A DNA stretch of 64,000 nucleotides from Mizuhopecten yessoensis (lineage: Eukaryota). The notes below the pieces were generated by a model. The model had not been told where the DNA came from and searched no databases. It worked only from the letters and a program-made list of their open reading frames with translations. The stretch covers positions 1-64,000 of the forward strand of contig NW_018479965.1 in NCBI RefSeq assembly GCF_002113885.1. The letters are read 5' to 3'. Positions 1 to 33,053 of this stretch are shown in pieces. Each line of letters begins with the position of its first letter. Within the stretch, counting starts at the first letter, position 1. The position numbers and the translations under genes were made by a program.

Positions 1-3000
1 ACCCTGAAGGTTTCCCGGTCCACGGATGATGCCAACAGACTTCTTAGCCCTTAACATATCAAGAACATGACCAGAAAGTTTGCCACCATCTGCATTTCTG
101 AAATCTTCTCCTCCTCCGTCTTTAGATCCACCTTCTGTGTCTGTTTGAAATTCACATATGAATACATAATCCTAACCAGTAATTTCTATCAGGTATAATT
201 GTACAAGTGTATATGACAATGCCATATGATATAAAGTTCATATAAGTATAAGTATACAATAGCTGCAGGTATCTGTCAGAAAATCAACCTCCTTTATTAT
301 AACCCAGCTTGGACAAAGTCAGAGCATATCTTAGCTGCTATTTCATGAATGGGCATCAAACACATGTACATGGAAAGGCAGTATGTCAAATTCTAAACAC
401 AAGTGCCCTCAATTTCACCTTTGACCTGTACTTCAAGTTATAAAATGATAGTTTTCTGAGCATATCTCAGCAACTATTTCATGAATGGATATCAAACTTT
501 GTACATAGGTACATCGTCCTAAACCAAAGTCACTGTGACTTTAATTTGAACTTGACCTTGCCTAAAGTGCTCAAAATAATGGTTTCTACAGCATAGCTCT
601 GCTGTTATTTCATGAATTCAGGCATGAAATGTTGTGTATAGGTACATCATGGTTAGGTGGTATGTTGTATCTTAAATAGCGTTACTGTAACCTCAATTTG
701 ACCTTTATCATTGACCACAAATAATAAATAATGATAATAACTTCAGTTTCCTATATACTGCTTTATCACGACCTAGATCCCAGGTCGTCTCGAAGTGGTT
801 TACAGATTTTTACCTGATTTGTTTTTGAGATACTCTGGAGGTTTCTTTTTTTCTCGCTTTGATACATTGTAGTTGTTTGTGATAACCTTACTGTTTGGAC
901 CAAACTGCATTACCCCCACATGATCTATCACTTGTGTTCGAGGACCTGTAAAACAATATAAAGACATTCAACAATAAAAACAATAAATGGCATGAAATCT
1001 TTATAGAAGAACAATGTTATCTATCAGTTATGAAGTGAATCATGAATTAGTCCTATCTTCACGCAGCTGTTGATCAGTCTTATAAAAGCAACTTTCCTGT
1101 AAGTCCCTTGTGATTGGTTTATTCACTGGCCTCTGGATCAGGAAACAGTCTTATGAGATAATATTGTTTTATCTATTGAGGTCACAACAATAATTAATAT
1201 AAGTTGCCCTTGCTGTGACTCTGATGATAAAGTGATAAAGTATGACCCCATGCACAGTGATATGAAAACAAGAGGCCCAGGGGCCTTAATAGCTCAACTG
1301 GTATTTTACTTTCAATTTTAAACCTTCTGAGTACCATACCAGTTTATCAAAGGAGCACAAGAAATACAAGTTGCAAGAAGGACAAAATCTGTTTGGGTTG
1401 GTAAGACACCAAGAACATGAGTGTATTTTTCATATCCAACAATTTTGTAAATGGTTATAGTGTGGGGATCTCAATTGTTTTCATGTTATGACCCATGGAG
1501 GTAGTCTCCAGGGAATGGTCTGGAACTCCGGGCCAATCCTGGAATGTTATAGAAATTGTATACTGTATAGTAATTAAAACAAGGCAAGGGTAGAGCCAAC
1601 GCTGTGGTTTTCTTAATGGTGGAATAATTTGGTCCTTTGCTCCTTGTCTGGATACCCGAAAGTATGCAGGGGATTGAGTAAAATAGATTCAATCACAACA
1701 GGCGAAGGAGCAATAAGTTGTTCTTATAGTTAATTAGGGATTTGTGTGCACAGCGAAATTGAACCCCCGCGAATATGTACTGAATACGAAATCGCAAAAT
1801 ATTAGCCCAGCGAAATTAAAGCGCTATATACAGTATTTGGTTATGATGTAAGGAAGAATCCCTTTCATTCATATGGAATATGAAGGATGTTATTGATTTA
1901 CCTCTATTTCCCCTATGAGGCCCTGCCCTCTGCCCCGTGGGTGGCCACATACTCTGTTTATACATTATAGAATTCTCTTTACCCAAATACGCTCTAGAAT
2001 AAGTTTGGTTCAAATTGTTTCACCGGTACAAAAGGAGAAGAATTTTAATATTTTCCTCCATTTCCCCTAATGGGCCCCACAATTCTGCCCAAAAGGGGGA
2101 CCACAGTTTCAACCATTAATACAAAATTGATTCTATTTGCCTAAAGATGCCCTACAACAGAAATTTATAAAATCCCTTTATTGGTACAAAAGGAGAAGGA
2201 TTTTATAATTTCCCTCTTTTTCCACTATTGGGCCCCATCCCTCTGCCCTAAAGGGGGCCACAGCCTCAGTTCATATAAAATTGAGTCCTTTTTCCCTAAG
2301 GATGCTCCAGATCACATTTGGTTTTAATCCCTTCATTTGTACAGAACGAGAAAAAAAAAATGCTCAAGACCAAATTTGGTCAAAATCTGCTGAGCCATTA
2401 AAGGACTAGCAATGTTTTAAAGGAAAAGGATGACGGTTGAGAAATCTACGTACCAGTATGTACAAAATTTTATTAAAAAATATCAGTTCATTAGAATTTA
2501 TTGTAAGACCACTTGACCTGTCATGTTACATTTATCTATCAAGTTTCAACAAATATAACTTAAATTCATTCTTTCAAGAGTTGATGTCCAGAAAGCATAT
2601 TACCTGTAGTGGAATGATTGACCTTTAAGGTATATAGATGTTGGTGGTATTGACACAAAATACACATTCATAATCTGTCTTAAGTTCCTATGATGTTTCA
2701 AAATACTTAAGCTACATGCTGTTATTTAACCATCAAAATACAGACATTTAATGTCATTAGAGCAGTGCATGGCGCACTATGTAGTCATAGACATTTACAT
2801 ATAGATATATGTATATATGAAATCTCAGCAAAAAATTATTAGCTCTTCATATTAAACTGTTCAGAGAAGCAATTCAATAGTTTCACAATTTCCATTTTGC
2901 TCCACCTTCATGATAATAAATCGGAGTGGTTTGTAACACACTGTTTAGACACAATATATGTACATCTTTGAATTTTTATCAAAAAATGTGTATCCATTTA

Positions 3001-5211
3001 AAGTTTAAGACCAAGACTTAATGAATTAAAATTAAATTACATTTGTTCTAAATGTTAGGAAAATTACCAGCGTGAATGTTGCATTTATTTTAAAGTTTAA
3101 TATCACAAAAAAATATTGATGATTTTTGTAAAAGTACATCCACTGACGATTACTACACATTGTATAACAGTAAAAGAATACCGTTAAATCCACCTCTCCT
3201 GTGGTCTTCATCTTCACTATCAGTATCGTCCTGAAAATAACAAGTGTATATTGATATTTATTAACCATTAAATAATTCGATAATTACATTCGGAAGTACA
3301 TGTAGATATAACGCTTATTACGTAGAATTCACATCTTAAGGCAAACTAATTAAAGAACCAATAAACCAGCATGAGTAAAAGCAGTAAAAATGAAAACTGA
3401 GAACAGAGTAATTTCTTTATAGGAGCATGAACTTGTACTGTTATTAGCTAAAAATCAACATAAGATGGAAGCAACACAACAACCTGAATCAAATTCTATT
3501 GTATTTTTGTATTTTATGATTTACTAAATGATATTTAATATATATCAGTATGATAGTTATTGTAGAAGTTTAGGACAAACAGTTGCAATAGAAAATAAAA
3601 TTACTACCCTATAATTAATGTAGTGGAAAGTGCTGATGGATGTATTAAACCTCAGTAGATAGCAGATATCCTAACGCAGTAATGGTAATACACTACTGCA
3701 GGATATACAGGCTAGGGGAACAAATGTGTACACAAGCTCTTAGTATCACATAAACACAAGTGAATAGCTCAAAACTGGTGGATGAATTGCTAAACTTCCA
3801 GATAGAAACTTAAATGCAAGTTGTAATTGGATCACAAGTTCTCCCCATTCTCCAGTATTAAAAGTTTATCAGATATGTACAAAGCTGCTACTTGGACAAT
3901 AGAGGATCTAGCGAACAGTTCTCGAGGATTTTTCTCAGAAGAAGGAGTTAAGTCATACTTCATAAGGATACCACACAAAAAGGATCAGTGTAAATCATTT
4001 TTATCACATGTAAGGGATTTTGTTTCTCCCTTAACTCCAAAACACATAACATGTGGTGATATGGAGGGAATGGGTGACCTTGATGTAATGAAACTCACTA
4101 TTTTGATAAAACGCTTTAAGATCTTTCCATCAATGTAAAGTATTTGATTTTAACATATCTAAATCTGAAGAAGAAGCCAATTTGACCCCTTTTACGGATG
4201 CATGAAGCACTGTGAAAGATGACTGACAAACGACGATCACAATCGGTCAACCTATACCATTGTCTCAGGTGACCTAAACAATACCGTTCTCTAGTTGATA
4301 TTTATCATACCTCCGATTGTTCTCTAGTTGGCATTCACATCACCCCTGAACATATCACCTCTGGATATAGTTTCCAGTAGTTGACATTCATATAACATCT
4401 GAATATACATGTAGAGTTTCCAGTAGTTGACATTCATATCACCTCTAAGTATTGAATATCCAATAGTTCAAGTTGGCATACATATTGCCCCTGAATGTGT
4501 TTGAGTGCCCACACATCAGTTTTACTCAAAACTCAAAATTACTTACCTGCATGTGCTTTTTTCGAGTCTTGTTTTTACTAGAATCTGATGGAAAAAAAAG
4601 GAAAAACCCAAATTACATATTTACCAAATATCTGTTATTATATTTTAAGGATTCATCTATTAAGCACAGGTACTTTCTAGGGTTTTTAAAGTGAAATTGA
4701 TAAAAAGAAATCTTCATGTTCTTATATCATGTATAATAAATTCTTTATTTAAAGTTTACGTTGTGATGATGAATGCCTTTGCCTGAAGTTGCATGCCTAG
4801 AAAAGTGGAAAGTTGTTGTTATTATTATAAGGTTAGCAAATGAAATCTTCAATAGTAATTATATACACCCAACAAATAAACTAGGTCTGTATATATATAT
4901 TTGTACAGTACAAGAGGATATTTCTCCCAAATACACCAACATACCTTGTCTCCAGCTCACACACACAAGCACGCATACACAACACACATGGAGGCAGGTC
5001 CTAAAATGATCTTAGCTGTTAATAGGACGATAAACAAAATAAAACCAAACAAACCCAAATCTGTCTTGAATGTCTCGCCTTGTTTGGCAGTAATGGCTAA
5101 CTTCTCAGCGTGGGACGTTTGATCCTCTTGAAAATGCTGCACATTTTTGTCTGCATCTTTGTTACTACTCTGAAGACAATCTGGGCACATTTTACTTCCC
5201 CGTCCTCCCAT
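1..5211 (-). CDS. Spliced gene (3' part outside window): N-myristoylation motif, RHIM-like motif and probable start of a FAM111/trypsin-like serine protease domain
   Basis: Coding exons 5211-5079 (GC donor; alternative GT donor after 5055, same phase), 4584-4547, 3230-3182, 945-814, 140-<1, all with AG acceptors and matching phases. Protein: MGGRGSKMCPDC...KQ/DSSKNKTRKKHMQ/DDTDSEDEDHRRGGFN/GPRTQVIDHVGVMQFGPNSKVITNNY...NKS/DTEGG...LDMLRAKKSVGIIRGPGNLQG. The protease call is inferred only from the final SVGII..G(T) segment. Confidence 0.7.
305..715. repeat. Intronic degenerate tandem units (TTGACC-rich, HINE-like internal array)
   Basis: About three degenerate copies of gcatatctc/ttagc..ctatttcatgaat...caaa...tacat...ttgacc. 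Confidence 0.5.
1267..2630 (-). mobile_element. Helentron-associated (HINE-like) non-autonomous element with about 157-bp internal tandem repeats and a nested MITE (about 1561-1835)
   Basis: Starts aacaagaggcccaggggcc...gctcaactgg, which resembles the reverse complement of the HINE end at 50606-50639. The unit aaggagaag...gggcccc recurs near 2032 and 2189. Nested element ends tactgtata...tatacagta. Confidence 0.6.
4310..4495. repeat. Short degenerate minisatellite next to a HINE terminus
   Basis: Repeated tagttgacattcatatcacctctg-like units; the HINE-type end tcaggtgacctaaa lies near 4265-4279. Confidence 0.5.
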
Positions 5212-15322: not shown

Positions 15323-18300
15323 ATGTCGGACGCAGCACAGAAACTCACCTGTAACATAAGGACGAGGTTGGTATCCATTGGTATTATCACAATACTGACA
15401 TTGAGTATATATAGTGCTCGCCATTCACAAGAAGCTAGACGAACAATCTATACATCTAGGATGGTACGAGGTACTCAAGTCAGGTAAGAACTACGCTTTC
15501 CCATTGTGATAGTTTATATGACGACAATTGTTGTAAGCTGTAACATAATATATACTGCTTTGACGTGAAAGTGCATTGTAAGTTGTACCATTACATATAC
15601 TGCTCTAATGACATATGTGATACTGAAAACGCTTCTCCGTCCAGGATACTAGAATTCGCTTTCGTCGGTATCTTAGCCTGACTCTGGTTCAATGTATCTA
15701 GGTTCATTACTTGAGTATATGTACAGTCAGTTTGATTCCTTTAACAATAACAGATACTTGGTTTTATCAAACCCTAAATATTTATTATGTATTGCCTTTA
15801 TCACAGCGGAAGCGATACGAATCCCATGGTCACGCTCTACCAGCTAGGGCGCGCTCCACATTCGCCAAGTCTTACGCCATTTGCAATCAAACTTGAAACC
15901 TATCTACGGGTAGCAAACATTCCATATAAAGTGAGTTTTTACAATATTATATTTATTTTTAACTATGTAAACTGATATTGCTGTTGACACCCGGCATACT
16001 GATTCCCAGTGAACTTACAACGATAGGGGATAGATAGAACGGTTGTTATCAAACATGAGAAAATGATACTATTCGTTTGAGTAAATATACGTTTAGCATT
16101 TTAGATAAAAGAAGTGCTTGATATCAGTAGTATATTCAGTTAATGCAAATTGCAAGGCTCTCTTGACCTTTTCTATTTTGTTAGTTGCAGTGTGGCTACA
16201 AAAAAAAGAGGGCAGTAGTCAAAATTTGATAAAATGAAAGACTTGTTGATTAACATCTTTACCGCCCTCGGTAAAAAAATGTCCAATTGTTTTTAAAACC
16301 ACCAGCTTCCTGGATACATTTCTGCATGTATGAAAAATGTGTTTATCAATTTGTCAATTTAACTCCAAGCACATGCACTGACTCGTCACAAGTAATGTCA
16401 GTGTTAACAACGTTGAAATGATCAAAACCTTTTTTAAAATGTCTCCCAAAACATATGGATTGAGATTTTTTTAGGGAAAATATTCATAAAAAGTATATTT
16501 AACATGTTCTTTATGACAAAGATAGATGTTAGTTGATTAAGATATTTTGTCATGCAATCTTTTATCTCATATCATTAAAACGTTTTAGAATGACCACAGC
16601 GGAAAATCTAGCTCCAAGGGAAAATTTCCTTGGATCTCATATAATGGAAAGAAAATTGCCGACTCAGAATTCTGTATCGAATTTCTGAACAAGGAACGAA
16701 ATATTGATCTTAACAATCATTTAAGCGCCGAACAGAGAGGCGCTGGACGAGCTCTTCAGAAGATGGTGGAGGAAAATACGTACTGGTATGTTATGTTGGT
16801 AGCCGTCATTCCATCTCTTCATCATGTTATGACATAGTAGAAGTAAACTACTTCTTTAATATGGAATTGTCATATAACATATCATGCTATAACTTCGCAT
16901 AATTCAACTCCTCAATTTGAACAAATATGATCTGTTATTAAGTGCTCAAAACGAAGGTTGGGCTGCTGCTGCTTCCTTCTCCTCCTTCTTCTTTATTCCT
17001 GCCTCGTATCGAAGATGACCCCCGTAGCATCTGATTTGTCGAGATTTAAATATTGACTTATTTCGCTCAACATTGGTATGTATGTGTATTATGCAATTAC
17101 GAATACTACAGTGACTTCCGTTAGCATCACGACCACGAAAATATTGCCTGTACTCTAAACCGATCGGAAAAAATGTCGTCGCCATAGCCTTCGCTATCAT
17201 TGCTATGCTGATGACACATACACATTAATATGGTTCTCCTGTTGCACCATTTGTGCCTGATTGTCACAAAACAATAACTCAACAATTTCATAAATTGCAA
17301 CGGCACGACCACGCCGTGTACTGAGTTTATTACAAAAACACATTGCATCCTCAATATACATACTCAATTCAAATCCTATCAAATTCAATGTACATCAACA
17401 TCAATAGCGTTACTTAGATATACTTATCATACTCGCGTATCAGTTTCGTTAAAGTGATACAATGAGGAAATATCCTCAAAAATTTAGAAAATCTGTGCGA
17501 ACGTGTCGACGTGGTCGCTCTGAATGACCACCTTACACCTTACACACCCACCCGTGCGACACAAGCACGGACACTACATGCTGCCTCATGCAGCACGCAT
17601 ACGACAGGAGAAAACAATTTCAGTCTAATTCGTACCTCAAACGAATGAAATTATATTTCTCCTGTTGCACCATTTGTGCCTGATTGTCACAAAACAATAA
17701 CTCAACAATTTCATAAATTGCAACGGCACGACCACGCCGTGTACTGAAACCCAAAGAACGGGAAATGTGTATTAATAAAAAATGGCTAAATGCCTAGATT
17801 TTTTGACACCGACAGCCTCTCCTCCAAAGAATCATTGACATAACCGTCTTTAGCGTTTTCTGATCTCCATCTGCCGTGCCTCTTAAATAATCTATATCCG
17901 ATAGCTAAATTGGCTGACCTATTTGCACAACTACTAGCCCCTCCTGACCTTAAACTATGCATTCCATACTTACTAATATCCGACACAAACGGGGAAAAAA
18001 CTTCGATAAACAATTCGCGCATCCTAGTATAAGAAAGAGGCCGGTTGTCTGATCGTAGAACGAAACCCATATTGGTTTTTGTCAATGATCTGAACAGGTA
18101 ACTATCCGAACCTACTTGTATTCCTGCTAATTTGATATATATTACAAAGTTGGAAACCGGACATAACTTGGAATACGTTCTCGCTAGTACGACGAGGTTC
18201 CCATCTCTGTAGATATCGGTTTTACTTTGTTTGATAAAAATTGTCATATGACTTTCCGCCAATTCTATGTCGCACATTCTCACATTTAACAATTCCGATA

Positions 18301-21300
18301 CTCTGAAAAAACCTGCATACGCAATTAAGCATGAACAAATAGTACGCTGTGAATACAAATTACTGTCACTAAAATTTGCAGTATACATCAATTCCAATAA
18401 CTCTGGCGTTATTGGTTCTTTTCTATCTTTAGGACCAGATAAACGTCGCTTAGCCCCCTCCAAAATGTTTTTTACAAGCGCACTGTCCGTTGGCGAATTC
18501 CCACCAAAAATGGAATGAGCCCATTTTATGCTGTAAAAAGCCTGTACGATGGGGCTAGGCGAAGAACTTTGTTGCACTAGACACGCGAGATACAAAGCCA
18601 CATGGATGGCCTTAGCCGGTAAACAATCCTTCACCTCTAGTCCTTTAGACAACGCCCATTTCTTCCATCTTGAAAAACCTTGATAGTATGCCCTTGTGGT
18701 ATTATTAGCTTTACTGTCTATCAGAAGTCCAGGAAGAAGGCTGACGTGTCCGGCTAAGGCCCCAGGTAGCTCTGCAATCTCGTGCTCGAATGCCTGCGAA
18801 AATATATGTACACAAAAAACTTTTAATTACACATATCATCAAAAAATTTGTACAACAATACAAATATAAGTACAAAAAACAAACTTCTGCTTAATAGAAA
18901 AATACAAATTACAGACAGCCCTGTAATTTAGGACAACCACAGCTAATGCAGCCTGTGGTTAGGACAATTACAGACAGCACCTGTAATTAGGACAACTGCA
19001 GAAAGCACTACAGTTAGGGATGGTTAGTATTGGTTACATTAGATATCATCCAAAGTCTAATCGCAGAGCAATCATCTTGAAAGGCAGATCGATTCTCCCC
19101 AATACAGACTTATTTCCCTTCCCCAGAGAATATGAATCTTTATTAGTTGGTAAGTATAACATTCCAACCACCTCGGGTCTAAAGCCGCCACCACTTGGAC
19201 ATAAAAATGGCCAAAAACTGGCAGACCTCCACAAAGGTACAACCAACGTGCCGTATGCACCACACTGTTGCATATACTTTAGCACTCTATGCACCAAGCA
19301 TACTGGTGGCACGAACCACCCGTTCACCCCTTGCCAATCAGCTGTGAACGCGTCCATACCGGACGACTGTGTATCAAAATACCTAGAAAAATATACCGGT
19401 AGCTTTCTATTGTTGACACTGGAAAACCAGTCAATTTCGTGAGGCCCCCAAAGGGAATCTACATGGACAAAAATGTCCTTAGACACACCCCAATCATCAC
19501 AATCAATGATACGACTGATGTAGTCTGCCTGCTCATTTTCCCCTCGAGGGATCCATTCAATATCAATAGAAATACCATTTGCTAAACACGTGTCAAATAT
19601 TGACAACGCAAGACTTTGTAGCTCGGATTTCATACTCCCTTTGTTTACAATACACACAACGTTCTGGTTATCTGTGTACCATTTCACACGCTTACCTCGA
19701 AGCACGTGTACCAATGACAACAATACACTACTGACAGCTGACAATTCACGCCATGTCGAACTTTTCTCCTTCTCGCTATCACTCCACATACCGTGGGCGA
19801 AACCAACCGGGGTATCTACCTCATATCCCCCGAAACCCGTACCACTGGCGTCACTGAAAACTATTTTTTGACAGGAATAATCAAAATTAAACTTTTTCTC
19901 GTTTATTCGATCGACACTCCTTTCCCAAAAATAAAGTTGTTCAATACTTGACCTAGACAATACTATTCCGGCATTCCATGATGGGGCAGATGCTATATCA
20001 ATACTTAAGCTCTTTGTCATTATATATACAACGTTTCCCAAAATGTATGACATTGAAACTATCTGTCCTACAATAGATGCTACTTTCCTAGTCCAAACCG
20101 ACTCAAATTTTGCCATATCGGATTTGACCCCCAAAATACAGGACCGTAACTTGTCTATTCTGATCTGTGGTATTTTTAAAATGCCCAACACGGTGTCTAT
20201 AAAGTTTCCCAGAAACACTAACTGTCTAACAGGCACCCAAGTAGACTTTTCCGGTTTAGGAACAAAACCACTTTGGATCAGATCATGTTTCACCTGACAA
20301 GCTATCAACGTACACGCAGACTTGTCAGCGTGTGTACCCAGGCCGTCATCAAGATACATAAGAATTTCCTTGCCCTCAGATCGCCATTTTTTAACTAGAG
20401 GCCTGGTGATCTTACTATACAAATAACATGCGGAACTCAGACCAAAAGGTATAACTTCGAATTTGAAAAATCTGACTTTATTACCGAATCGCCATGAAAA
20501 ACCCAAAAATGTTTTGTGTGGTTCGAAAATTTCAATGTGGTGATAGGCCGAATGTATGTCAAATTTAAAACAAAAACAATCATTTTTGATAAATTGCATG
20601 GCCACCCTTATATCTTCAAACTTTACACTACATTTCCACAGGTGTGCATTGACGTGTCTCAAATCTAATATAAGACGTTTCTTACCGCTAGCTTGAACGG
20701 ACACTGTCAATGGGTTAGTGACGTAAGGCATCTCGCTACACTCTACAACCAATGACCTTGCTACCAGATCTAAGATCGCTTTCTCAACAAATGATTCATG
20801 TTTCAACGCCGACTGATTATTTTTTAACCATACCGAACATGGAGTAGAATAAAAGGGAATCTTGTACCCGTTTCTGATAGTATCCAATATAAAATTGCTA
20901 CATCCTATACTCTCCCAGAACGAAATACGTCCTTTTAATCTACCCTTGACTTTGATATCAGCTTGCCCTTGCTCGTATTCATAAAAATCATCAGTCAAAA
21001 AATACTCATCTTTTACAAAGTCACTCTTTTCCGCCTGCACGACTGGACTTGGCTTGGCCTGGACACTCGTTTCTCCAGTGTGAGAATGATCCACAGCTAA
21101 AACATCCGCCTCCAGTCGTCCGCCTTCGTTGTGGGTAAGTGTGTGCGTGTGCTGACCCGGCCTGGGATGCGGGCCACGCGTTGACCCATGACTCCTGACC
21201 TTGGGGCACACGAAAGGGCAACTGAACACCAGAAACACCAGGACCAACACTCGCAGGCTTGTAGACACTTTGTTTACGATTGTGCTGTTGTTGTTTTCCC

Positions 21301-24300
21301 TTCTTTTTCTTGAGGGCCCGATTCTCCGCCCTGTTGATTTTCCCCTCATCGTCAGAATTACTTGCTATTGGATTGTGCTCGTAATGACGCACAGTTTCCC
21401 ATCCACCGTCACTGGTATCCGCGATTTTAATTAATTTGTTTCGCTTGGACAATTTCTCCTGCACACTAGCTACTAATTCGCACGCATAGTCGACCTTTAC
21501 ATTTTGTAAAGCCCAAGACACTTGATCCAAATCTTCCTTTATTTCTGTGTTGAGGGCAAACTGCAGTCTATGACTCTCGCTTTTCCATTTGAAAGAATGT
21601 TCCACCTTTAAACGCTTGACCTGGGCGGACACCTGCCCGGCCGACCCCTTTACTTCCTCCTTCAATTCCCCAATTTCGCGCCGTAAATTTGCGTTTATAG
21701 ACGCAATACTGTCACCTTGCGATTTCACGGCGTTTAGAATGTCTCCTAAACTTATCTGTCCTCCTGAATTTAAAACTCCATCACTTGGAGGCAGTGAAGA
21801 ACCCTCTGCAGGATCAGACATCGAAAAATGTGTTTACTTTACCTCGCTCTCAGTACTTTAGAAAATCTGTGCGAACGTGTGTCGACGTGGTCGCTCTGAA
21901 TGACCACCTTACACCTTACACACCCACCCGTGCGACACAAGCACGGACACTACATGCTGCCTCATGCAGCACGCATACGACAGGAGAAAACAATTTCAGT
22001 CTAATTCGTACCTCAAACGAATGAAATTATATTCATCAAACAACAGGCCAGTTGGGATACAATTTCAGAAAAGCTTGTCTGACAAATATCAGTACCTGGA
22101 GGAACGCCAAATGCTAAAGCTTAATCAGGAAAAGACGGAACTAATCGTCTTTCCCCAAAGTGTCAGCAAACAATGACTCTCCAGCTCAAGGTTGGTGTCA
22201 GAACTATCGAGACTCTCCCAGCTGTTAAAAACTTAGGGGTATACTTTGATAGTTCACTGAACATGGCGAAACAAGTGAACGCTATTGCCAAATCCTGTTA
22301 TATAACTACCAGATCAGGAACATCGGCTGTTTCCGGAAGTTTATAACTAAAGATGCATGCAAGATTTTGGTTCATTCACTTGTTACCTTTCGGTTTAATT
22401 ATCTGTCAAACTAACTAGTCGTCTGCAGAGGGTCCAGTACACTGCAGCACGGCTGGTTACTCGTACTCGAAAGAGAGAGAGCACATCAAGTGGTATCTTC
22501 ATTGCACTGGTTACCTATACGATACAGGTCGCAGTACACAATTTTGGTAAACAAACAATGCACTGAATGGAACAGCTTCCCAGTACCTACAAGAGCTTGT
22601 TACCCTGTATCAGCCGTCAGAATCTTTGTTGTTTGTTCCAAACTCTCGTACTGTGACCTATGGAAACCGGTGCTTTGTGAGGATTTCGGCTACGTTATGG
22701 ATAAGCTTACCAAATGCTATAATAAAGTCAAATACCCTGGCCAAATTCAAGAAGGACATAAAAACTCACCTCTTTACGTCTGCATTTTAGGCTCTTTGCA
22801 AAGACGTTATGTAAATACCATCCTTTATTTATTCATTTATGTTCACATTGCGATGATTATCTGCTTGAGTAATGTATAAAGGTGATTGTAAGCTTTTTTG
22901 TTTCACAATTATAACTAATACTACTATTCATATGTTGTGAAGAGCTCTTGAGTAATTTTACAAATTATGTAGGGCGCTATATAAATGATGTATATTATTA
23001 TCATTAATATTATTATCATCTACGAGTGTTACAACCGCCTTTACCATTAGAACTTGTTTGGAATATGCTAGTAAACTAGCATCACAATCGAGTTCCGTTT
23101 TCTGAGACAGTCAATGTTTCAAAATAAATTCTGAATGCACAGAAAGTTAAGCTATGTGTTTGCAATTTAATTGCAACTAGATGTAGCAGCCAACATCGTG
23201 TGTTTGTGTTTCCCTCCCGGATGTACCAAAGGACGATAGTGTTGTCAAAGATCTTTTCGTACCTTCCAAATAGTCAAAGAGTGATGCATTAAACAAAAAG
23301 ATGTATAACGTTTTCCAAAGTCATTTCGAGTTATTTCGAGTTGCACAGCGACTATTACCAAATATATAGGATATAACATTATGCCATTACATTAGAATTT
23401 GGACTATTATCCGAATACATTAAAAAACCATTTCTGTTCATATTTTATGGCTTTTGTGAATTTTCAAATATTAATTTTGTTTTTATCTCAGGTATGATCA
23501 TGGTCAAAACTGAACAGAATTTACGATAGGGAATAATAATTCTTTAAAAATAGTTTTTGTCGTCCTTCATTAAGACCGTACTCCTTTCTCCTGATATAGG
23601 ACTGTAGTTCTCGACCGTTGGGTGTATGACAAGACGAACGGAGCTCCCACTGCTTTAGGGGTCCCTAAAATACTGCGGTGGCTCTTTAGGTCAAGGATTA
23701 AGACCGCGGCCAAAAAACAAGGGATGGGACGACATACCCAAGATGAAGTCGAACAAATCCTGCGTAGTGACATCAACGCCGTTTCTGATTATATTGGTAC
23801 GTAAAAAAAGAAGACAATTCTAGATGACGTAAAATGTAAGCAAAAGGAAATTGCATTATCGATTTGTTTAAATAATTTTGTGAATATATATAAAGAAATG
23901 ATACATTACTACAATGTACTAAAATTCGCGATTCTCCTCGGTGGATTTATGAATAACGACCTGAATAAAAACAAAAATGATTTGCTGACATCATCTTATT
24001 CATGGTGCGCTGATAGTACGCCCCCATTTGATATAAACTATTGTACGCTATGTTAGTGTAAATATATGAATACGAAATGCAGACACAACCTATCAATATT
24101 CTACTACTTACAGAAGACAGACATCGTATTACACCAGGTTGTGGGACGCGGTATCCCTATAAATAGGAAATATAAAATCACCAATAATGTTTACTTTATA
24201 TGATGGCGAACGGAGTTAAAAGTATCAATAGTTTGATATTTAATACAACTAATTGATTAACATGAAGTATGTTCAGGGGCTTCATAATGGGGGAAAAAAC

Positions 24301-27329: not shown

Positions 27330-30300
27330 TTAATATTCTGATTTGTGAGCCTTGACCGTGTTGTCGACATCAGGATCCAAAAATTCCTTTCCAGACAGGT
27401 CGAAGTAGTTTGTGCACTCTTTAATGGCCGAGTTGGGAACCTGTTGTAAATCAAATATTATAAAATTCCTATATTTATGTTTGCTGTATACATGTTCAAA
27501 AAGGATAAACAGAGAGTGTTGAACAGCGTTAAGAATGTAGTACATGTGTGTGAAAAACATGAAGGCAAAAGTGAATCATATTAGATGAAATGAAAAATGT
27601 TCATCTCACTTCGCATAAAAGTACGTAATTTGTAAAACTCATGCAGGAGAGTAGGATTCAGTATTGGATTGGTTTGAATGGCTGGGGGGAAACTGGGAAA
27701 ATACATCAAAGTCACTACATGATACAAATAAGTAATAATTACAATATTCAAACAGTAACTTGAAATTGTATGTGTTGCTTAATTGACACTTAAAACCTCC
27801 AGACATGCATACATAAATAGTATTATATTCCAGTCTTGTGAAAAAATTAAAGCATTCCCTAACTATTACTTGAGTTACCTCCCTGTACTCTACATCTTTC
27901 AATTGACAAGCTACCAAACAATTGTGTGTCTACACACAATATTGGAAACGGTGTACATACATGTTTATACGTAGTCTTCAAAATGTTATTTTGGTTAATA
28001 TTTTTACGGGCAATCCAATAATTTAAAACAAACGATATATATTTGTTTGAAGAAAACACAAACAAGAACACAGAATATGGTTATCAAATCATAAGTACTT
28101 AAAACAGATGCATTATATTTAACTAGAAGGATGTACCTACCTTCTCTATTGGGGTGTACTGGGGATGATGATGTGGGCGCAAGGAGTTGTTAGACTTAAG
28201 GTTGTACGAATACAGGAGAACCCATCGGCGGGTATCGCTTGTGTTTACGTCACTGGTGTGAAGCAGATTGCAACTGAAGAATATTGCGTCACCTACAACA
28301 AGCCAAATGATAGTGTCCAACACAAATATGGGAGATATTTGAGTGATGTGTAATTGATATGGATAAGAAACCAGGAACCAAAACAACGTTAATGATTGCA
28401 TTGTTTTGGTGTTGATTACCATAACATAACATTACTAATGTTATTGCAACATAAACACCGACTAGATTTCTCGAACATATCATGAGAAAATATCGAGAGT
28501 GTATATTTGAAAAAAATCAATATAATTAATCATGTTGGATTGATATTTAAAAGAAAAAATATTGATGACGACTCTCAAACACCCTTTTGGCAAAATAAAG
28601 TAAAATGTACTATACCGGGGTTCATTTCCACGTATTCCAGGGGACATTTCGCCTTGATGTCTTTTACCCTATCCAGCTCGGCCTGGTGTTGTCCTGAGTA
28701 GGGTAAATGGTCGATACGGCCACATTTGTGGGACCCTCGTAGGATCTGAATAACATTTAAAGTTTTATAAGACGGAGTCTATAGATGTGATTAAACAGAC
28801 AGCATCTCTGGATTGACTACATTCCGCAGTTAGGATATGTATTTATACTTGTACCAAAAATACACGGTTTAGGTATTTATTAGCTCAACTTCCGAATGGT
28901 TATCAAATTATAATCAAGAACTAGCTGTCGCCTTGCATAAAAAGGAGACTTGTCGTTGATAGCTAAAAACTCAAAAAGGAGTGGACTTTTTAATCTCTGG
29001 TTCTGGTCTTTTGCTCTCGTTTTATAAATTCTTAAAGAATGTTGAATTATCTCAAATATGTTTACATAAGTCACAAAATCCAAAAAAATAGGATAAAAAC
29101 AGTCGTGGTATGTAAATTGTATACTTCATATATTTGCTAATGAAAAATGGTGTAATGTTACCATACTATACCGTTACCTGTTTAAACAAATCATTGCATA
29201 AAAAGAAACCTTTATCATAAAATAATATGACGTGTTTATTAACTCTCAATCCGTGTAATAATTTGGTCTAAAGAATCTTAAACGAAGCCTTGGTGACTAA
29301 AGAAATTAGGTTGAATTGATTGGATAAAAGGATGAGTGACGTCACCTGTAGACAGCCATTAGCCTTAGTGCACTTGTCCACAGCGATAAAGGACGTCAAA
29401 AGTTGGGGGAACAAGATACTATTCTTGTACCAGTACCTACAAAAAACCGTTTATGTTAAAGAAAATATAAACTCAAAGATAATATACCCAAACGCACAGT
29501 TCTCGTGAGGGTGAATTTGTTCGGGTCATCAACGTGAGAGCGGAAATATGATCCACCGAAATAGCATGACACGCTTGAAAATTAGCCGCAAACTACACTT
29601 TCGTCATTGAATAGCGAGAATGTTGCTGTAGTGATTCATATAAAAGTTCAATGTGGTTGTTTGAAAATAAGAAAAGATAAAATAAGCAAGATATTTGCAT
29701 ATAACCGGAGTATTTATAAACTGTATTAGACTGTATTACAGTGCAGTGATACATGTCTACCTACCTGATGGTAGGTAATATAAACTGAGTGGGTGTAGTT
29801 CAAACATGTTTTAACAATTTAAACTCTATCCATTACCATCTTTATTATTATGGCGACTGCATGCGGGTTGATGTCTTCAATTGATAAGTCACAATTATGA
29901 GAGAATGGTGGGGTAATTGATCATAAGGCCACATGCAAAACTATACTTAGCAGAATGTCGTTTGATTAGTAATTGTATGAGACATATTGCATAGTTTAGT
30001 TGTTCGTATAGACACGGACCTAAATTATATCGTGAAAGGTTTTAAAATAGCGATAATTTAACTAATGTAAACTCAATTTGTAACTTTCAGTCAAAGTCGT
30101 GAAAAAAGAAGCTGGTGTAAAACAACCCCACTATGAAGCAGTATAATAATGGATGTGTATATATATAGATATTTATATATAACATTGGTATAGTATACTA
30201 GTGAACATATATTGTAAGATTACCGTGTATGTAATAATGGTATTCGGACAGTCAGTTTACACAATAGGTATATATTTTCGTAACTGATATTGATTGCAGA

Positions 30301-33053
30301 ATAAATAGTTATTTAGAATAATGTTAAAAAACACCATCTCTATGTAAGGATAGTTGACCTACCCGTAGTCCTGGTGCCACAGTAATCCCCCTCCTGTTCG
30401 GGCATCCTTTTGTACAAACTTAGCGTGATAATGGTAAACCTCTCCCCCTAATAACTATAAAACAATTCAGCAATTAAACTAAAATTAACTACAACATGTG
30501 CCAATAGTACGTTGTATAGATTATTTTACAATATTAACTTTTTAACAATACTTATCACAGAAAAAGGTCTACCCACCTTTTCACTTGTATTTACTACTTT
30601 TTCACTTCTAGCTACCATCCCAGTGACGTCATTTCCGGGATGGCCCCATATGACAAATTTGGGCTCTTTTCCGGTTCCATCGGGTAGCTTTAACACAAAA
30701 CATCACATCAAAGACTCAATGAAATAGTTTTAGATAACTCCATTGCAAAGCTAAAGAAACCAAAATAATGACTGACTCTCTAAACATAGGATGAAATTAA
30801 TGTATACTGAAGAATATACGTTCCAACGCAATACTTCAAAACGAGAGAACTGCTGGTTTTACACATATTCAGAAGAATTCCCCATTAATTCATGACGAAA
30901 AAGCAATATTGGACCCGCATTTGGTATTTTTAAACAATTGGTATGACTTCCGTTCAAAACTTGAGGAAAGGCAATTAGAAAACCACCTTTATATTTGGCA
31001 AACGTTCTGCTCTTTGATTCTTATATAAATTGAGGTGAAAAGTTGATATCATAAATTTGTTGCTGAGACGTCTCAACAATAGCAGCGTTGCAACGTTTTT
31101 CCGTTTTTATATAAAATGTTTGCTTCAATGTTATTTATTCATTAAAATGGGGTTTAAGGCAAACACATGTTTGCGTGGTCCCTCTGTTCAAACTGTTGCT
31201 CCGGCTGTGTCATCAGCAACAGTCTGACATTCTGGGCTGTTGCCCATAAACAGTCAGCAACAGTAGGATTAATGTTACCTAGTTGTTAAACGTGATTAAC
31301 AATTCAGTAGATATTTACCCCATAGCCATATTTGCTCCTCATTTCGGACTCTTCCAATACTTTGGTCACTTTGGTCGTTTCCTCTTTGTCCAGGAATCCA
31401 CTAACAATATATAATAATAAGACAAAATTGATTGATATGCCAAGGACCAAATCATCCCTAATGTTGACAAGAAAAAAACAATCAAGGGAACTTAGAAGAC
31501 AAGACATAACCATATCAATGATAATAAAGGTTGCTTTCTGTCGTTTGTCTTTTATGATCGGGGGAACACAGCAGTGGATAACAGAGTTGATATGAGCAAA
31601 TATTAGCCGATTGTGTGTGCATGCATTATCACATAATGTTTTCAAACATACTTATGTATCATTTTGTATTTCTACCCTCTTAGTGGTGTATGTATTACAA
31701 TTAAGAGATGACAAATATTCACTATCGACATGCTCGTTTGGCATGTGTTTGTGTTATTCAAAATACAGATGGATATTATTGATTTATTCAAACAGAGACA
31801 TTATAAAAAATGGTAAGTTTGTTGGAAAGTGTCGACGGACATTGTCCTTTTAACCCGAATCGACATGATCATTTACATTGACTACCCCCTCAATGTTAAA
31901 TTGTTTGTTTATCCGTACGACATTGATGGTTACTTGTTTATTGTGAACAACCTTGACACTTCATCTTTGGAGCTTATCAATACTACATTGACAGTTAAGT
32001 GTATGTAGTGAACAGCCTTGACACTTCATCTATGGAGTTTATCAATACTACATTGACAGTTACGTGTATGTAGTGAACGACCTTGACACTTCATCTATGG
32101 AGTTTATCAATACCACATTGACAGTTACGTGTATTTAGTGAGAACCCTGACACATGAGGTATTGAGATATGTATACTACAGTAATTATCACTTACCGAAT
32201 CATTATGTATCCATGCTCATTATAATCCTTTAGCATTTGTTCCGTCACCTCAAAGTTGTCGGGGTTATATTGATATTCTGCAACATAAAAGGTCGGTTGA
32301 AGGTGCACCTCATCACTTATAATGAGCTATATTGACGACATAAACAATCAGCATGTATACAAAGGTCAACCCCTCTATAAAATTGCAATAGAGTAAATGC
32401 TTTATTGTATGGTAAGCATCTTGAAGCATATACATCATTTAGACAGAGGTAACTAATCTATATATGAAATATAATTAACATGTAATAGATTAACTTCATT
32501 AGAATGCTTTTACTGCAACTATTTGACCCCCCCCCCAACAGTAACACAACAGGACTCAAACAAAACCCAAAATAACAGGTGAGCTTACCAACAAATTATG
32601 ACGTAAGAATTGGTCATTTATCAAAATAATTGCAATTTTCGTCAGCGATAGTTGTATTAAGATGAATTATTGATATTACGGGTGAAATAAGCACTCATCT
32701 CTATCGATATATTGACATTTAAAAATATGTTAAAAAATTGAAAGTTTATAGATAAATAAAGGTAGAAATACAACGTAATGAATCACCTATTAAAAAGTAA
32801 TCGATACAGAAAGGCAAGCATACTACCGTGTAAATAAATTTAATTTACCATATAGCCTTTTCGTCCTTTAATGTAATTAATATCGACAGCAAAACACAAT
32901 CAATGTTTAAAGTGTTCCGCAGTTTAAATACGTAATACTGCGTTTATGTATCATCAATCCTAAATCTGAATACAGTGACAAACTATGTCAGCATTTAAAA
33001 CCCCTGGAGTGGGTGTACACACACACATACTTACCTGCGCTTGTGAGTTCCAT
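27330..33053 (-). CDS. PhyH-family Fe(II)/2-oxoglutarate dioxygenase (proline 4-hydroxylase/ectoine hydroxylase-like), 289 aa, 9 exons
   Basis: Exons 33053-33035, 32277-32196, 31400-31319, 30687-30577, 30454-30363, 29436-29346, 28745-28616, 28292-28141, 27440-27330 (870 nt). Motifs YNEHGYIMIRGFL, LLGGEVYHYHAK, WHQDYGYW, NGCLQILRGSH, PGDAIFFSCNLLHTS.N.S..RR. Confidence 0.9.
31918..32153. repeat. Intronic 65-bp minisatellite, about 3.5 copies
   Basis: ccttgacacttcatct.tggag.ttatcaatactacattgacagtta recurs at 31951, 32016 and 32081. Confidence 0.85.

Follow-up and report, generated by a model that had tools for sequence, protein, structure and literature searches.

A predicted FAM111-like serine protease of the scallop Mizuhopecten yessoensis, with a putative lipid anchor and a conserved linker motif, belongs to an uncharacterised mollusc-wide family

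We report a gene at the beginning of a 64 kb stretch of DNA from the scallop Mizuhopecten yessoensis (hereafter the window: the first 64 kb of contig C76638, NW_018479965.1, starting at contig base 1) and propose a model of how its product might work. Judged from its sequence, the window holds the 5' part, comprising five coding exons, of a FAM111-type intracellular serine protease gene; its relatives form an uncharacterised family of cytosolic FAM111-like serine proteases found across the molluscs. We are confident of the predicted architecture, in which a lipid-anchor start and a disordered linker with a short strand-prone island precede a FAM111-type protease domain. The island is encoded by exon 4. 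A sequence-only reading of the same stretch had interpreted it as a RHIM; this interpretation is not supported by our searches, which yielded no demonstrable RHIM in the exon-4 segment, and the segment should not be classed as one. For the protein as a whole we see nearly an even chance that it would act as a membrane-tethered protease switched on by clustering.

The spliced frame put forward in the sequence-only reading stands: its start (MGGRGSKMCPDC), the acidic patch, the segment VIDHVGVMQFGPNSKVI and the end in AKKSVGIIRGPGNLQG all lie on the minus strand where that reading had placed them (Table 1). The five exons are bordered by AG acceptors and GT donors with compatible phases at every junction. 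The splicing model is built on these consensus sites and on the gene structures of orthologues, and in Pecten maximus and Argopecten irradians the motif likewise occupies an exon of its own, in the same position and with the borders of exon 4. No in-frame ATG precedes the start codon of exon 1 in its open frame, and positions -3 and +4 are both G. The acidic patch of exon 3 is also present in the annotated protein P0001. Exon 5 encodes a glycine/acid linker followed by the start of the protease domain, namely a helix (…HVLDMLRAKK) and the first strand SVGIIRGPGNLQG. The frame had been described as truncated by the window edge; it is indeed open at base 1, but it is the contig itself, not just the window, that ends there. 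Since the contig start cuts the gene inside exon 5, no catalytic residue falls within the window.

The continuation of the gene can be read from related copies and from orthologues. Contig C3905 of the same genome bears two related copies, A and B. Copy A is 92% identical to the window gene in exons 3-5 and runs on past exon 5 into …TSYHL…, …ELDVAVL… and …GTSGSPG…, which hold the His, Asp and Ser of a catalytic triad; copy B is a pseudogene. Full-length orthologues are found in Pecten maximus (P0002, 424 amino acids), Argopecten irradians (P0182) and Ylistrum balloti (P0181). The Argopecten orthologue cluster includes Logan contigs of 1.6-3 kb with an uninterrupted 405-residue frame, and as the genomic gene has introns these contigs look like spliced transcripts. 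In searches and folding the full-length orthologues P0002 and P0056 stood in for the whole protein, while the window exons were used singly. Genome-wide searches were run on an assembly of 988 Mb in 82,659 contigs, which is fragmented and has many gaps.

The downstream part of the protein is supported as a predicted FAM111-type trypsin-like serine protease domain. Such a domain had been suggested from the SVG segment with which the window frame closes, and the continuation bears this out: copy A and the orthologues proceed into a protease with the His-Asp-Ser triad in trypsin order, intact in copy A and invariant in the orthologues (H182, D237 and S334 of P0002). In a phmmer search of the PDB, FAM111A (8s9k) came first with an E value of 1.2e-6, the alignment running from the helix before that same SVG strand; window exon 5 can be aligned to the opening helix and the first strand of the protease domain of FAM111A. 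An AlphaFold2 (AF2) model of P0002 built on 100 family sequences exceeds pLDDT 90 throughout residues 138-410, with a helix at 138-153 preceding the first strand. Foldseek placed FAM111A (8s9k) on top (E 3.9e-17, TM 0.75-0.77); the fold ranked second, at 3e-10, trails by seven orders of magnitude. Pfam gives Trypsin_2 (PF13365, clan PA) as the sole domain, at or just below its cut-off in the pectinids and above it in several relatives.

FAM111A and FAM111B (PDB 8S9K, 8S9L) are therefore the closest known proteins, as the best protease match by both sequence and fold. They share with the scallop protein the triad, the opening of the domain by a helix, the 'SVG' strand and G-T-x-F in succession, and a C-terminal protease preceded by a regulatory region. 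The differences are equally plain. Identity is about 20%, and the scallop protein is without the ubiquitin-like (UBL) domains and the PIP box. The vertebrate FAM111 layout has two UBL domains, with a PIP box in mammals; here Trypsin_2 is the one Pfam hit, the N-terminal exons match no Pfam domain and AF2 renders that region disordered. A lipidation-type N-terminus with a disordered linker, unlike the arrangement in FAM111A and FAM111B, predicts localisation at a membrane and not at the replication fork.

How widespread is this arrangement? An exhaustive search with P0002 across 1.84 billion representatives returned 162 proteins at E ≤ 0.001, with the protease C-terminal in nearly all. Each named member that was looked up is molluscan and is annotated as 'uncharacterized' or 'hypothetical'. 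The hosts are scallops, the unionids Potamilus and Sinanodonta, the clams Mercenaria and Ruditapes, Dreissena, Mytilus, Tegillarca, Pinctada and Saccostrea, together with one gastropod, Haliotis. Other members fuse the same protease to HEPN_DZIP3, to a Roc-COR GTPase or to Ig-plus-transmembrane modules, partners typical of the defence repertoires that have expanded lineage by lineage among sessile marine animals (Kaur et al. 2021, PMC8195603). That paper makes no mention of this protease family, FAM111, RHIM or myristoylation. The trypsin-like effectors of prokaryotic and marine-invertebrate conflict systems that it describes resemble the scallop protein in carrying a terminal trypsin-fold effector with variable adaptor or sensor modules and in their lineage-specific expansion in sessile marine animals; they differ in the adaptor, the scallop protein having a predicted lipid anchor joined to a short motif instead of a Death-like or TRADD-N domain. 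A review of FAM111 lists UBL-less relatives for a coral and a lancelet only, and includes neither molluscs nor lipidation (PMC9798293). Literature searches on FAM111 in molluscs and on animal amyloid motifs with trypsin-like effectors turned up no description of the architecture. In the literature searched, a FAM111-like protease that has both a lipid anchor and a short motif prone to assembly is undescribed; it is a variant of a known protease type.

The N-terminus is of the N-myristoylation type and, with its nearby Cys, forms a conserved predicted lipid anchor. Substrates of N-myristoyltransferase (NMT) start with Met-Gly and have a small uncharged residue at position 6, with Lys favourable at position 7. 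The MGGRGSK encoded at 5211-5191 has Met-Gly, a small residue at 6 and Lys at 7. Corresponding starts in four pectinid genera read MGGRGSK, MGARGSK, MGTSGSK and MGTCFSK (in longer form MGGRGSKMC, MGARGSKLWTCC, MGTSGSKMRTCG and MGTCFSKC), so that the signal is kept in the Pecten, Argopecten and Ylistrum orthologues alike, as is the motif island, both above chance. Farther afield we considered the 63 diverged molluscan representatives of the family that have at least 60 residues before the protease (N-extensions): an NMT-type Met-Gly start occurs in 18, all but one of which (17/18) have a Cys in the first 15 residues, and several other relatives begin with cysteine clusters instead. The myristoylation consensus first noticed in the window is thus a recurrent feature of the family, mostly with an adjacent Cys. 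The CxxC that was said to follow it holds up in part: a Cys near the N-terminus is conserved, the CxxC spacing is not. This pattern, in which the presence of Cys is conserved and its spacing varies, fits palmitoylation better than metal binding, and a metal site was ruled out on the same varying spacing among orthologues.

Met-Gly with a nearby Cys is the dual-acylation pattern of Src-family kinases and G-alpha subunits, whose signals are of the MGC… type. The scallop family has in common with them the Met-Gly, the small residue 6, the basic residue 7 and a Cys within the first 15 positions, conserved in orthologues and in paralogous subfamilies. What differs is that the predicted signal sits here on a serine protease, a pairing undescribed in the literature searched. 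Exon 1 holds a second conserved island at residues ~35-50 (AITAK/…FK), which reads …EKLAITAKQGETFK… in the window, …EKIAITAKSKEIFK… in Pecten and …EKMVVTSKSGDTFK… in Argopecten; it is common to the Pecten, Argopecten and Ylistrum orthologues, with a nearly invariant Phe. In the Pecten maximus genome (LR736839.1, L012) a palmitoyl-protein thioesterase gene (Pfam Palm_thioest) lies at 27891-28990, ~9 kb downstream of the orthologue and on the opposite strand; its vicinity to a protein with a palmitoylation-type N-terminus may be a coincidence.

Exon 4 encodes the most hydrophobic stretch of an otherwise polar N-terminal region; none of the other four exons reaches its 7-residue hydropathy, and it sits between the acidic patch and a lysine-rich tail. 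Its homologues read …IIIDYMESMNIGCTS…NVTYNIT in Pecten, …VIEYVESINIIHNH…TTYNNIT in Ylistrum and …VIDQLGQLNIACTG…TNYYIQ in Argopecten. The segment can be aligned in 21 family members (the window and 20 others), and a unionid relative, which has YIQFGKNSTIKEYNIT, matches window exon 4 at a BLASTP E value of 7e-4 in one pairwise comparison. Among the 63 N-extensions, 14 contain the pattern hydrophobic-x-hydrophobic-G-x-N, with 16 occurrences in all, against 3.4±1.8 in shuffled sequences (0/500 shuffles reach 16), and some relatives carry two or three consecutive units, as in P0056 (…IIGGN…IGKN…INIGSN). The feature that is conserved is an island prone to form strands, hydrophobic-x-hydrophobic-G-x-N, which is encoded by an exon of its own and lies in a predicted disordered linker. 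In the AF2 model of P0002 residues 1-137 are disordered (pLDDT 28-57, ~28 in the motif segment) and have no secondary structure, while in the monomer model of P0056 the motif forms a weak hairpin at pLDDT ~58. Neither monomer model docks the motif on the protease. On the Potamilus streckersoni contig JAEAOA010002170.1 (L013) two family members are arranged head to head, less than 500 bases apart: P0187/P0178, which starts MDCFGFCG… and has the motif IVDFGKHN…, and P0020, which starts MRCCCLGKKK… and has the motif YIQFGKNS….

What might these features amount to in a working protein? We propose a molecule of four parts: a dual-acylation-type N-terminus, with Met-Gly…Ser-Lys for myristate and a nearby Cys for palmitate; a disordered, highly charged linker of ~120 residues; within the linker a strand-prone island, VMQFGPN with strand-like flanks in the window copy; and a C-terminal FAM111-type protease opening with the helix that mediates dimerisation in FAM111A. 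At rest the protein would be an inactive monomer held at the cytosolic face of a membrane. The exon-4 island may be an element of self- or hetero-association that folds upon binding, a role that we put forward tentatively, as possible and no stronger. A trigger would then cluster the molecules, the protease domains would dimerise and activity would follow, as in FAM111A. Activation by clustering is plausible since FAM111A, an antiviral restriction factor, requires dimerisation for its activity, by way of the helix that begins its protease domain (PMC10920703). The fusions to HEPN_DZIP3, Roc-COR and Ig-plus-transmembrane modules, together with duplication and decay at the family locus, suggest that the setting is likely innate defence or regulated cell death. 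A review proposes that a role in defence preceded the replication-fork role of FAM111 (PMC9798293). What the sequences show is the structure of the gene, the family of the protease, and a lipidation signal and motif island that are conserved; the chain from lipidation through motif association and clustering to an immune role is inferred.

A stronger version of this model would make the motif a self-templating, amyloid-like element, independent in sequence of the RHIM, through which clustering at the membrane would switch on an immune or cell-death protease; we think this improbable. In form the motif recalls the fungal and bacterial amyloid signalling motifs HET-s/HRAM, PP and BASS, which are likewise short G/N-rich strand-turn elements beside an effector domain and are sometimes repeated two or three times; the likeness is one of form and not a shown sequence relation. 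Those motifs define themselves by being shared between NLR receptor and effector, often in adjacent genes, and here searches of low sensitivity found no second carrier. If the amyloid-like reading were true, the family would do in animals what amyloid-signalling effectors do in fungi and bacteria, the executioner here being a protease; self-assembly of the motif would provide a new, non-RHIM case of prion-like signalling in animals, and a new effector family for the immunology of bivalves facing OsHV-1, Vibrio and transmissible neoplasia. FAM111A is a human disease gene as well as a restriction factor, and the molluscan branch provides a concrete hypothesis, open to test, in which proteases of the FAM111 type work outside the nucleus as effectors activated by proximity.

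Several results weigh against our reading of the motif and of the locus. A profile built without the pectinids ranked exon 4 first of 2129 six-frame pieces, with 7.9 bits and an E value of 0.49; for this reason the homology of the motif across all subfamilies is taken as suggested by the sequences and is not claimed as proven. A search for further carriers in the genome with the motif profile recovered exon 4 and the C3905 copy alone, although a 34-position profile has low sensitivity against 1 Gb. A region-restricted word search with P0056 gave no carrier beyond the query, and among the genes neighbouring the family members in Pecten, Potamilus and Argopecten we found no receptor-like gene and no carrier of the motif, both again at low sensitivity. 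Finally, the last exon has a single close copy in the whole assembly, and this copy is on C3905; the 3' half of the window copy is therefore not assembled.

The alternatives that follow were judged separately and are not mutually exclusive. The motif could be a plain docking peptide that adds a strand to a folded partner, for example through a core like that of SUMO-interacting motifs (SIM), and does not self-assemble. Linear motifs typically appear as such short islands of conservation amid disorder, and Ser/Asp-rich runs stand upstream of the motif in many members. The first strand of the pectinid motif, [VI]-I-[DE]-x-hydrophobic, with the acidic patch upstream of it, also calls SIM-type cores to mind. 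This acidity of the first strand is missing outside the pectinids (TTIVSKK, TTIISNK), and the best-conserved element, the G-x-N turn that several members repeat two or three times, suits a stack of strand-turn-strand units better. We hold docking without self-assembly to be unlikely.

The islands of the linker could also be cleavage or pseudosubstrate sites, where a cut after a conserved hydrophobic residue, made by the anchored protease itself or by another, would free it from the membrane, perhaps to enter the nucleus by way of its basic tail. FAM111A prefers Phe at P1 and cleaves itself after a Phe just N-terminal of the protease domain, and its N-terminal region appears autoinhibitory (PMC10920703). 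In the scallop family a Phe is kept in the exon-1 island (ETFK, EIFK, DTFK), Phe or Ile precedes the G/A of the motif, and in most members a lysine-rich tail resembling a nuclear localisation signal follows it. The putative P1 residue of the motif is however F, I or L among orthologues and so not a constant aromatic, the candidate sites are 60-90 residues away from the protease domain, and the modelled linker is not docked in the active site. We give this explanation little weight.

Of similarly low probability, in our view, is that the gene copy in the window does not function, being a mere fragment or a duplicate in decay, whose features would then be uninformative on a working protein at the locus. 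The contig stops within exon 5, the last exon is found in one close copy, and the family locus on C3905 includes a clear pseudogene, copy B. Against this, all five exons of the window are open, their splice sites are intact and the start codon has a good context; the ~8% of nucleotides that differ from the C3905 copy include no disabling change. A missing 3' half is moreover to be expected in an assembly as fragmented and gap-rich as this one. Copy B has a bearing on public annotation too. Its stop in exon 1 arises from TTA to TAA within …EKLAIT…, and the isoforms of LOC110454370 at NCBI (P0001, P0179, P0180) open with MDLNTEEDGHSV… and have no MG start. As MDLNTEEDGHSV… corresponds to the exon-5 region of the copy B pseudogene in another frame, the public LOC110454370 models look chimeric.

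Is the motif a RHIM after all? The resemblance was a fair lead, since motifs resembling the RHIM are known from invertebrates, where they lie in disordered parts of innate-immunity proteins (Kajava 2014, PMC4262963; review PMC13506858). With the RHIMs of RIPK1, RIPK3, ZBP1 and TRIF and the insect cRHIM of Imd/PGRP-LC the scallop motif shares a short strand-prone sequence of hydrophobic-polar-hydrophobic-Gly, an Asn nearby, a likely innate-immune context and unstructured flanks, disordered in the P0002 model and at most a weak hairpin in that of P0056. Mizuhopecten VMQFGPN and Potamilus YIQFGKN are similar to the RIPK and TRIF cores, with N and NY in the flanks. MQFG is nevertheless outside the strict RHIM core [IV]Q[IVLC]G, and it is not conserved: its counterparts in the Pecten, Ylistrum and Argopecten orthologues are MNIG, INII and LNIA, with the Q replaced in all three genera and the G lost in two. 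The strict core occurs once in the 63 N-extensions against 1.04 expected, that is, at chance level. The Pfam RHIM model PF12721 matched neither exon 4 (E up to 1) nor any of the 21 homologous motif segments (E up to 10), and scanned across the genome it did not recover the exon-4 locus. The same scan yielded no convincing RHIM-bearing frame that could serve as a partner; its two best matches are weak, lie in short open frames and were read as chance. The motif profile run against the PDB at E up to 10 returned matches at chance level only (PARP3, a xylanase and Top7), with no RIPK1, RIPK3 or HET-s chain among them. That exon 4 encodes a true, divergent RHIM, through which an amyloid with a RHIM-bearing receptor or kinase would activate the protease, is on these grounds very unlikely.

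Table 1. Features of the Mizuhopecten yessoensis protease gene in the window and of its related copies on contig C3905
Feature	Position	Strand	Description
Coding exon 1	5055..5211	-	157 nt; ATG 5211-5209; reads MGGRGSKMCPDC...ETFKTDL; MGGRGSK start; Cys at residues 9 and 12
Coding exon 2	4547..4584	-	38 nt; basic stretch SSKNKTRKKHMQ; AG/GT borders; phase matches exons 1 and 3
Coding exon 3	3182..3230	-	49 nt; acidic patch DDTDSEDEDHRRGGFN, which includes DDTDSEDED
Coding exon 4 (motif exon)	814..945	-	132 nt; segment VIDHVGVMQFGPNSKVI at 931-881; basic tail KREKKKP after the motif
Motif	863..937	-	three short strand-like pieces: TQVIDHV / GVMQFGPN / KVITNNYNV
Coding exon 5	1..140	-	reads ...LDMLRAKKSVGIIRGPGNLQG, ends …AKKSVGIIRGPGNLQG; open at base 1, cut by the contig start
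Dispersed repeat, intron 4	320..730	.	>50 partial matches at 64-84% identity on many contigs; not in the gene product
Copy A, C3905	exon 3, 32175-32223; exon 4, ~30984-31099; exon 5, ~30187-30329; last exon, 23521-24291		related copy
Copy B, C3905 (loci L002, L005, L008)	61800-66004		pseudogene; TAA in exon 1; indels in exons 2 and 4; exon 5 strongly diverged

The introns of the window gene and the remainder of the window contain a few further elements. The dispersed repeat in intron 4 (Table 1) is probably a SINE- or MITE-like element. Intron 3 holds at 1857-2352 about three diverged head-to-tail units of ~130-150 bases each (…tttcccctat.gggcccc…ctgccc…ggggg.ccaca…), which are not reported by TRF; the units match each other and C3905:51741-52371 at 66-74%. 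Farther into the window, on the minus strand at 17786-21821, there are long open frames of 288, 767 and 266 amino acids.

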